IMG/VR virus record: IMGVR_UViG_3300043464_001630
Coordinates: 172,392-236,391 of that record
Reading direction: 5' to 3' (one strand)
Length of the DNA: 64,000 bases
In this document: piece after piece, positions 63,064-64,000 of the stretch
Layout of the letters: every line of letters begins with the position of its first letter
Numbering within the stretch: position 1 is the stretch's first letter
Position numbers and translations under genes: made by a program
Notes under the pieces: generated by a model
Seen by the model: only the letters and a program-made list of their open reading frames with translations
What the model was told of the DNA's origin: nothing
The model's database searches: none

Positions 63064-63113
63064 AAAAGTAATTGACTACAAAAAACTTTCTGCTACTATA
63101 GCACCATCAATTT

Positions 63114-63242
63114 TAGATGCGGAACTGCAAATCCACCTATGACTATGTTCTCCCCCAGAACAACCGCATCTAGCTCTCAGATAGAAACAGCAAACCTAAA
63201 ATACACCGCACGGCTTTCATGCCGCTTATAAAAAACCTATCT
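63114..63242 (+). ncRNA. Two tandem stem-loop RNA units carrying AACWGCAAA, upstream of the Ro60-like gene
   Basis: TAGATGCGG/CCGCATCTA and AGATAG/CTATCT stems, each with AAC(T/A)GCAAA and an inner hairpin; promoter at 63072-63099. Confidence 0.6.
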
Positions 63243-63250
63243 AGTAAATT

Positions 63251-64000
63251 ATGAACTCACTAATCAACGCAATCCAAAACAAACAGAACGTAACGACCAC
63301 TGAAAATGGTGCAGCTACACTAATTTCTTCTTTAAAATGTACTGTGGATTTCTTTGGCTTGGGAGGAGCACTACGTACTCGTACTGATGCTGATGTTATT
63401 TCTTTGTTCAGTAAAGCTTTTGCAGAAGATCCCTTGATTGCTGTTAAAACTCTGTTTTTTATCAGAGATTGCCGCTCTGGAAGTGGTGAACGTAAAACTT
63501 TTCGTACTATCTTTAACTGGCTATCTAAAGAGTATCCAGAAGTGGCAATTAAGAATCTACAAAATGTAGTAGAGTTTGGACGTTGGGATGATCTATACTC
63601 TACACGGGGAACCGACATTTGGAAGAGTCATGTTCTTCCGATGATCCAAAACGAATGGTTCAAGGGTGGAACTCCTTCACTGGCTTGGAAATGGTTTCCA
63701 TCGAATAACACATCCAGTAAAGAAACTCGTACTATTGCTGAAGAGATTCGTTCATTCTTGGGAATTTCTCCCCGTACTTACCGCAAGACTCTTTCAGAGA
63801 AGCGTGCTATTCTAGACATTGTAGAACGCAAAATGTGTTCTAATAACTGGTCTGATATCAATTACAAAGGAGTACCATCGAAAGCTGCTCTAAATTACAA
63901 GGATGCTTTCGATAAACACGATCATGATCGTTATCAACAATATATTTCAGATGTAAAAGCAGGAAAAACTACTATTAATTAAGGAACACTATACCCTTAT
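63251..64000 (+). CDS. DUF2828 family (TROVE/Ro60-like) protein; in-frame TAA at 63980-63982, with the frame continuing off the window
   Basis: TENG, RD.R.G.GER..F, GRWDDL, KW.P, YRK.L, VE..MC...W..I.Y..VPS.A, then IN*GTLYPY. Confidence 0.82.

Follow-up and report, generated by a model that had tools for sequence, protein, structure and literature searches.

The window analysed here, 64,000 nucleotides (nt) of DNA at positions 172,392 to 236,391 of IMG/VR virus record IMGVR_UViG_3300043464_001630, is the final 64 kb of a 236-kb viral contig from a lake water sample, and close to its 3′ end it carries two small structured RNA units placed directly in front of a gene of the DUF2828 family. The units belong to a non-coding stretch (62886-63253) composed, in this order, of a promoter-like site (P1), a structured segment of about 140 nt, a second promoter-like site (P2), the two units and the ATG of the gene. 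Two other loci are used for comparison, namely L002, the locus of an 84%-related phage, and L024, the start of the same contig, which directly continues the end of the window. Relative to L002, the leader has indels of 8, 4, 2 and 4 nt and is thereby shown to be non-coding. P2 (TTGACT-16-TACTAT, 63072-63099, plus strand), noticed already in a first-pass annotation made from the sequence alone, has 9 of 12 matches and a TG before the -10 element, and is retained in L002 as TTGACA...TAGTAT. P2 is proposed to drive a transcript that would carry units 1 and 2 together with the DUF2828 gene. Promoter-like sites as a class are not enriched in the region over shuffled sequences (6 versus 8.5). A megablast search with 62000-64000 gave no match among deposited phages, and ARAGORN found neither tRNA nor tmRNA genes in the window or in L024.

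Both units follow the architecture that the first-pass annotation had described, in which the first strand of a closing stem is followed by an unpaired motif, a small inner hairpin and finally the closing strand. Unit 1 (63114-63173, plus strand) has a 9-bp closing helix formed by UAGAUGCGG (63114-63122) and CCGCAUCUA (63164-63172), with an unpaired AA, the motif CUGCAA (63125-63130) and the inner hairpin (63146-63162) between the two strands and a G (63173) at the 3′ end. Its CUGCAA is a variant of the CAGCAA of the family, and the same variant is present in L002. Unit 2 (63179-63244, plus strand) has a 6-bp closing helix of AGAUAG (63179-63184) and CUAUCU (63237-63242), which encloses AAA, CAGCAA (63188-63193), an inner hairpin closed by CGGC/GCCG (63211-63224) and an A-rich 3′ side, and is followed by an A and the terminal G (63244). 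The ATG at 63251 lies 8 nt past the closing strand of unit 2, as had been annotated, and 6 nt past the end of the unit; the latter gap is 2 nt in L002, and a Shine-Dalgarno sequence is absent before the ATG. The minimum-energy fold of 63105-63250 reproduces both closing helices (-26.7 kcal/mol, z = -3.3, with 1 of 200 shuffles equal). Thus both units have a terminal helix of their 5′ and 3′ ends that borders an internal loop with the motif, as Y RNAs do. Neither contains a tRNA-like domain (T arm, closed acceptor-like stem, D arm).

Neither Rfam 15 nor the deposited records examined contain an annotation of the units. Rfam 15 covariance models gave no match in the window at gathering score and only chance-level snoRNA matches within 62850-63300 at E values up to 10. 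Among seven related loci, the same models gave only tRNA matches (with tRNA-antisense plastid-model matches), and for L024 and L002 a single chance snoRNA match.

The DUF2828 gene occupies 63251-64000 on the plus strand with its first 250 codons, as identified by Pfam, by an overlap of the contig ends and by its predicted Ro60 fold plus vWA domain. The 243-codon open reading frame (ORF) at 63251-63979 matches DUF2828 (PF11443) with 125.1 bits at a cut-off of 29. The gene resumes at L024:147-830 and, read through the circle, comes to 477 codons, a typical size for the DUF2828 family, with a C-terminal DUF7788/vWA piece (170.8 bits for DUF7788); the L002 ortholog matches PHROG 850 “RNA-binding protein” with an E value of 3e-150. 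The contig ends share 146 nt (window 63855-64000 and L024:1-146) with a single mismatch, which is consistent with a circular or terminally redundant genome. This mismatch, an A at 63981 against a C at L024:127, gives rise to an in-frame TAA at codon 244 (63980-63982, plus strand). In the L024 copy the codon reads TCA (Ser), the L002 ortholog also has Ser there, and contigs of two further assemblies, one of them from another study, cross the window end with one letter different, at a position that is not reported. The TAA is therefore probably a contig-end error or variant, and readthrough or recoding at this codon is ruled out by the TCA of the other copy, the Ser of the ortholog and the uninterrupted independent assemblies.

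We found that the protein is Ro60-like at the level of its predicted fold. The AlphaFold2 model of the L002 ortholog, 84% identical to the window protein, has a mean confidence (pLDDT) of 91.7 and a pTM of 0.90, and a Foldseek search of this predicted structure against the PDB returned Ro60 or Rsr in all of the top 8 matches, with E values from 1e-8 to 1.5e-5 and TM scores up to 0.63 over about 550 columns. These include Xenopus Ro60 (1yvr/2i91, E 1e-8), Thermus phage phiLo Ro60 (9l5y) and Deinococcus Rsr (2nvo). The residues D288, S290, S292, T353 and D385 are invariant and make up a complete MIDAS motif, and DUF2828 proteins also share invariant basic Arg/Lys residues. In the model, therefore, the protein has the HEAT-like helical ring and vWA/MIDAS domain that characterize the Ro60 family. 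DUF2828 proteins are found in at least 711 deposited phage genomes and more than 4,000 protein clusters; the carriers include Felix O1 relatives, Listeria P100 relatives and cluster L mycobacteriophages, in which the gene is annotated as hypothetical or “Ro-like”, without an RNA partner.

Upstream of DUF2828 genes in other viral contigs, whose proteins are 35-57% identical to that of the window, we found the same RNA pattern. An early loose repeat scan was uninformative because of too many chance stems, and a stricter scan and then a covariance model were used instead. Alignment A2 holds 34 units chosen by a script that requires helix pairing; R1 is the covariance model made from units of the window and viral DUF2828 loci, in which unit 2 scores 41 bits (E 1e-4); and alignment A4 holds 83 R1 matches, 77 at independent genome loci and 6 at cultured-phage loci, most of these loci being outside model building. 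In A2 the helix is 86.9% paired, compared with 68.9% in shuffles and 31-45% in slid controls, and the covariation score of 0.575 (0.22 in shuffles) was reached by none of 500 shuffles. A pair just beyond the stretch used for picking the units covaries as well (AU 20, UA 8, GC 3).

In A4, seven helix pairs have no unpaired cell at all, and three of the seven are split near-evenly between two kinds of Watson-Crick pair (AU/GC 44/36, CG/UA 58/22 and AU/GC 43/37), with G-U pairs among the compensatory changes. CAGCA is present in 82-83 of the 83 units and the 3′ G in all 83, while a T-loop-like GTTCRANYC was found in 5. Over columns 3-9/178-184, changes are almost only compensated transitions, such that at the base of the helix most relatives have a pattern AAG-R-Y-R-C paired with G-Y-R-Y-CUU. 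Because compensated transitions preserve the purine/pyrimidine pattern of each strand, this fixed pattern suggests that the helix is read directly by a protein.

Several other identities were considered for the unit. A riboswitch was rejected as the interior of the unit is not conserved, and helices of 7-9 bp were judged too short for an RNase III site. Mimicry of a D arm, with U/A-A-CAGC-AA after a 7-bp helix standing for tRNA positions 8-15, was dismissed after three units inspected by eye showed no 3′ GCUG, and mimicry of an anticodon loop, considered because the CUGCAAA of unit 1 is similar to a tRNA-Cys loop, was dropped as the position of the universal U33 is occupied by A in the family consensus.

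The units are tightly linked to DUF2828 genes and to their strand. For the window and 22 loci, all 71 R1 matches are on the strand of the gene and 18 of 21 viral relatives are positive, a search of viral loci that is partly circular because the model was derived from those loci; elsewhere in the 64-kb window R1 matched nothing beyond units 1 and 2. The co-occurrence test that the first-pass annotation had proposed, with a covariance model of the units and DUF2828 genes as targets, came out in favour of the link. In an independent set of 80 DUF2828 loci from bacterial and archaeal genome assemblies (38-48% protein identity, 650 kb, E<=0.05), we found 103 matches in 58 of the 80 loci, all 103 on the gene strand and about 99 of them upstream within 1.8 kb. 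As no match fell on the opposite strand, the false-positive rate is below 1 per 650 kb. Among the 22 negative loci, 16 of the 21 that were checked carry CAGCAA within 700 nt upstream, usually after an A and a plausible 5′ strand. In both sets together, all 174 matches share the strand of the gene and nearly all lie no more than 1.8 kb upstream of it, inside the distance of about 4 kb on the same strand used as the proximity criterion for Y RNAs. In the reverse direction, an exact-pattern search with one unit variant returned 13 viral loci, 8 of them with a DUF2828 gene inside the stretch examined and a ninth with one 6 kb off.

These observations lead us to a reading that we hold to be the probable one, though with some reserve, namely that the units form a widespread family of small structured RNAs that would play the role of Y RNAs for the Ro60-shaped DUF2828 protein, the two together forming an RNA surveillance or repair particle. 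The first-pass annotation had left two options, Y-like RNAs or autoregulatory operators, and the location of the units in the relatives bears on that choice.

If the units acted only in cis, as operators or structured leader elements through which the DUF2828 mRNA is regulated in its translation or stability (autoregulation or occlusion of the start codon), they would not be free partner RNAs. The arrangement in the window speaks for such a role: both units stand between P2 and the ATG, unit 2 nearly touches a start codon that lacks a Shine-Dalgarno sequence, and the last unit of many relatives ends 15-90 nt before the start codon. However, we found three more units 0.5-0.8 kb downstream of the gene, in L024, where they lie in a promoter-driven cluster without ORFs (L024:1311-2095). 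There a third promoter, P3 (TTGACA-16-TAAAAT, L024:1311-1338, 11 of 12 matches), precedes unit a (L024:1352-1406) and unit b (L024:1410-1466), which is followed by a structured segment of about 140 nt and by unit c (L024:1609-1659), and no ORF of at least 40 aa occurs after P3 until L024:2125. Furthermore, units follow the gene in Mycobacterium phage Winky or lie between tRNAs, kilobases from the gene, in other genomes, and they occur in 2-6 copies per locus with differing inner modules. A purely cis-acting role is thus unlikely, and the operator option fits less well because units are also found in ORF-free transcription units, behind the gene and within tRNA arrays; the Y-like option is supported, with binding by the protein to be expected by analogy. 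The two roles are compatible, and as unit 2 abuts the start codon without a Shine-Dalgarno sequence, binding there may dampen translation, so that an additional autoregulatory effect at this unit is plausible.

In cultured phages, units were found in four of the five genomes scanned, and Vibrio phage V05 gave a marginal partial match (17.8 bits). Bacillus phage 2S-4 has six units that occupy the gaps of a tRNA array ending at the gene. In Listeria phage LMTA-34, three units are immediately upstream of the gene and an RtcB gene is 1.3 kb downstream. Winky has three units in an unannotated gap right after its “Ro-like RNA binding protein” gene, with the helix base altered to GGAC/GUCC, and its middle unit has the layout of YrlA, with T arm, closed stem and D arm. 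In an Escherichia Felixounavirus, a unit next to the gene (23.8 bits, E 0.04) separates tRNA-Met from tRNA-Asn, and another weak match (21.1 bits, E 0.12) lies deeper in the array. In the record of this type examined (LR597663; L039:21540-27231), the tRNA genes are deposited as minus strand; ARAGORN places the nine tRNA genes checked (21540-22872) on the plus strand, the strand of the DUF2828 gene and of the unit at 21877-21942.

This proximity to tRNA genes raises the alternative that the units belong to tRNA arrays, as processing punctuation or as tRNA-sized decoy or helper RNAs set free by the enzymes of tRNA processing, and that the Ro-like gene is merely nearby. Consistent with it, units plug tRNA gaps on the tRNA strand with a spacing of 0-5 nt (in Bacillus phage 2S-4 and several viral contigs), are embedded at L005 and L007 in tRNA-like genes of 115-120 nt that match the Rfam tRNA model, occur in the array of one phage with no DUF2828 gene within 10-20 kb, and have a 7-bp helix followed by an unpaired base, as in an acceptor stem. 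Against this, a tRNA within 4 kb is lacking in 40 of the 58 genome loci with units, the window and L024 are free of tRNA genes, the Winky units lie beside the gene without an array, and eight loci with tRNAs near the gene gave no model match. Moreover, a strict single-stranded motif with a fixed helix pattern exceeds what a processing signal needs, and we consider this alternative improbable. A DNA-level repeat (protein-binding site, origin or mobile miniature element) or a chance likeness of two hairpins is in our view virtually excluded: the units do form short inverted repeats within AT-rich intergenic DNA and the promoter-like sites alone are no commoner than in shuffles, but strand bias and covariation already contradict both ideas, with every model match on one strand relative to the gene, compensatory changes that include G-U pairs, a motif that is asymmetric, on one side of the helix, no other copies in 64 kb, and a pattern that, with the relatives included, lies far beyond chance.

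Next, we compared the units and their gene with known Ro/Y RNA systems. Ro60/Y RNA particles have been studied in RNA quality control and autoimmunity. To our knowledge, the Ro partners known from bacteria and phages are all TROVE-type proteins with CGAA-type RNAs. Bacterial and phage Y RNAs near TROVE-annotated genes have been described as YrlA/YrlB in Salmonella, Yrn1 in Deinococcus and YrlA in a mycobacteriophage, and YrlA RNAs combine GNCGAAN0-1G with a tRNA-like domain, the Ro-binding motifs being GGUCCGA and GNCGAAN0-1G (PMC4201824). The Ro60 of phage phiLo binds Yrl1 and Yrl2, two Y-like RNAs encoded upstream of its gene, in which a terminal stem borders a CGAA-bearing bulge, and the complex recruits the host PNPase (PMC12135203). 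In Salmonella, rsr-yrlBA-rtcBA constitutes an RNA repair operon (PMC7790460, PMC9879122; also PMC4201824).

Several features are shared with these systems. The DUF2828 protein has, in its predicted fold, the same ring of HEAT repeats with a vWA/MIDAS domain; several small RNAs lie within a few kb on the strand of the gene; the RNAs have a terminal helix of their 5′ and 3′ ends around a loop whose 5′ side bears a short, purine-rich, conserved motif; some members (the Winky unit, L005 and L007) have a tRNA-like domain; and RtcB is often adjacent. In contrast to Ro60 systems the protein is composed of Pfam DUF2828 and DUF7788 and not of TROVE, and, unlike Y RNAs, most units are minimal (50-70 nt) without a tRNA-like domain and are often interleaved with genuine tRNA genes. 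Of the 80 genome loci (L047-L126), 36 have a neighbouring RtcB ligase gene on the same strand; together with Listeria phage LMTA-34, they reproduce the arrangement of rsr-yrlBA-rtcBA, with a Ro-like gene, small structured RNAs and RtcB on one strand. This, together with the adjacent tRNA arrays, backs the link to RNA repair suggested in the first-pass annotation. Distinct from the Salmonella operon, the units come first, RtcR/sigma-54 control is not evident, and the phage of the window has no RtcB within 64 kb plus 3 kb. The rtcB gene can be directly upstream or directly downstream of the DUF2828 gene, also at L041:6850-8061, and when it is upstream the units precede rtcB.

Small stable RNAs co-transcribed with phage tRNA clusters are known, for example from the tRNA region of T4. 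The units resemble these species in being tRNA-sized non-tRNA RNAs in arrays, presumably freed by tRNA processing, and differ from them as a family whose defining traits are the module of helix and ACAGCAA and the linkage to DUF2828.

A number of observations weigh against the interpretation of the units as Y RNAs of a Ro-like protein. At the sequence level the term “Ro60/TROVE-like” of the first-pass annotation did not hold, as TROVE (PF05731) gave no match to the protein at E<=1 and a profile of 48 DUF2828 proteins did not retrieve any Ro60 chain from the PDB at E<=1; it is the fold that carries the likeness. The units have A-CAGCAA (CUGCAA in unit 1) after the AAG-R-Y-R-C helix where Y RNAs have GGUCCGA or GNCGAAN0-1G, and CGAA is not conserved in them. 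Unit 1 departs further, with a U where 82 of 83 relatives have A and with only 23.9 bits in R1. The gene is present without a unit within 3 kb at L019-L021. Conversely, a tRNA array on a 192-kb phage contig contains at least five units, whereas DUF2828 is absent from the 10 kb upstream and the 20 kb downstream of it (about 40 kb covered); this contig is either a true exception or has its DUF2828 gene elsewhere in the genome. RtcB is absent from the window (64 kb plus 3 kb) and from L024, the window has no tRNA gene either, and we found no RNA sequencing runs that contain the window phage. Finally, A4 was fitted to the model, which favours pairing, and A2 was picked for pairing; the slid controls, at 33-55% for A4, and the strand bias are unaffected by model fitting.

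Other features of these loci deserve mention. P1 (TTGACA-16-TAATAT, 62892-62919, plus strand) is TG-extended with 10 of 12 matches, and its position is retained in L002 as TTTACT...TATAGT. Behind it, a putative structured non-coding RNA of about 140 nt (62926-63066, plus strand) has 28 predicted pairs, 6 of which are maintained by double-sided changes relative to L002; it contains no ORF, no ACAGCAA motif and no Rfam match. In L024, a second promoter (L024:1671-1699) precedes a roughly 360-nt RNA. This RNA closes with a T-arm-like GGATTCGAATTCC and an acceptor-like strand, is followed by a terminator (2062-2094) and is recognized by neither ARAGORN nor Rfam. A promoter and leader matching those of this RNA stand before tRNA-Met in L002. 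Past the RNA cluster, a 258-aa ORF (L024:2125-2901) has weak matches to Phage_endo_I and DUF7487 and may encode a homing-type endonuclease. The array of another phage (L028:2021-2094, 3731-3806 and 4503-4852) has tRNAs with the anticodons tta and cta, which are suppressor-like, and a tmRNA (tag ANDYALAA) directly after a unit. On the one phage contig without a nearby DUF2828 gene, a TnpB-like ORF (L043:12728-14368, Cas12f1-like_TNB) is found between a unit-bearing tRNA array and a lone unit.

On the reading of the units as Y-like RNAs, the following mechanism can be proposed. In addition to the transcript from P2, a separate strong promoter, P3, would transcribe units a and b without an ORF, with unit c and the longer RNA following up to the terminator, and the units would then be processed into separate small RNAs. 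Each would offer a terminal helix of 7-9 bp, a single-stranded A-CAGCAA after the 5′ strand and an unpaired G after the 3′ strand. We infer that the Ro-like protein binds this helix plus ACAGCAA module, while the variable interior, a hairpin here and a tRNA-like domain in some relatives, may recruit or mimic other RNAs or enzymes. Such a particle would serve in quality control, repair or protection of tRNA or other structured RNA during infection, a role that is made probable by the analogy to the Ro60/Y RNA/RtcB operon and by the tRNA arrays and RtcB genes that neighbour the units in relatives.

We found no description of these RNAs in the papers searched on DUF2828, ACAGCAA and Ro-like phage genes; the tRNA-like member from cluster L mycobacteriophages may already be listed as a YrlA among the 22 phages of PMC4201824. 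Ro60/Y-RNA particles in phages are already known (PMC4201824, PMC12135203), and to that extent the “new phage ribonucleoprotein system” of the first-pass annotation is to be narrowed; the apparent novelty lies in the RNA family and in its association with the DUF2828 branch. Taken together, the results probably reveal a second type of Ro/Y-RNA particle, one with ties to tRNA genes and to RNA repair. More tentatively, and as a possibility to which we give somewhat less than even weight, it could be a second, sequence-distinct lineage of Ro-type ribonucleoproteins spread over tailed phages of Bacillota, Actinomycetota and Proteobacteria and Clostridia-type genomes, tied in phages to tRNA arrays and RtcB as a means of tRNA protection or repair against host RNA-targeting defences; the minimal units of 50-70 nt would then be the simplest Y RNAs known, and their tRNA-embedded versions would point to an origin of Y RNAs from tRNAs.

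For the DUF2828 family, a searchable RNA module beside the gene provides a testable ligand, and the units would account for unannotated gaps in phage tRNA arrays. As the carriers include phages of tractable hosts (E. coli, Salmonella, Listeria and M. smegmatis), the function of phage Ro particles may become accessible there, including a possible role in countering tRNA-cleaving defences.

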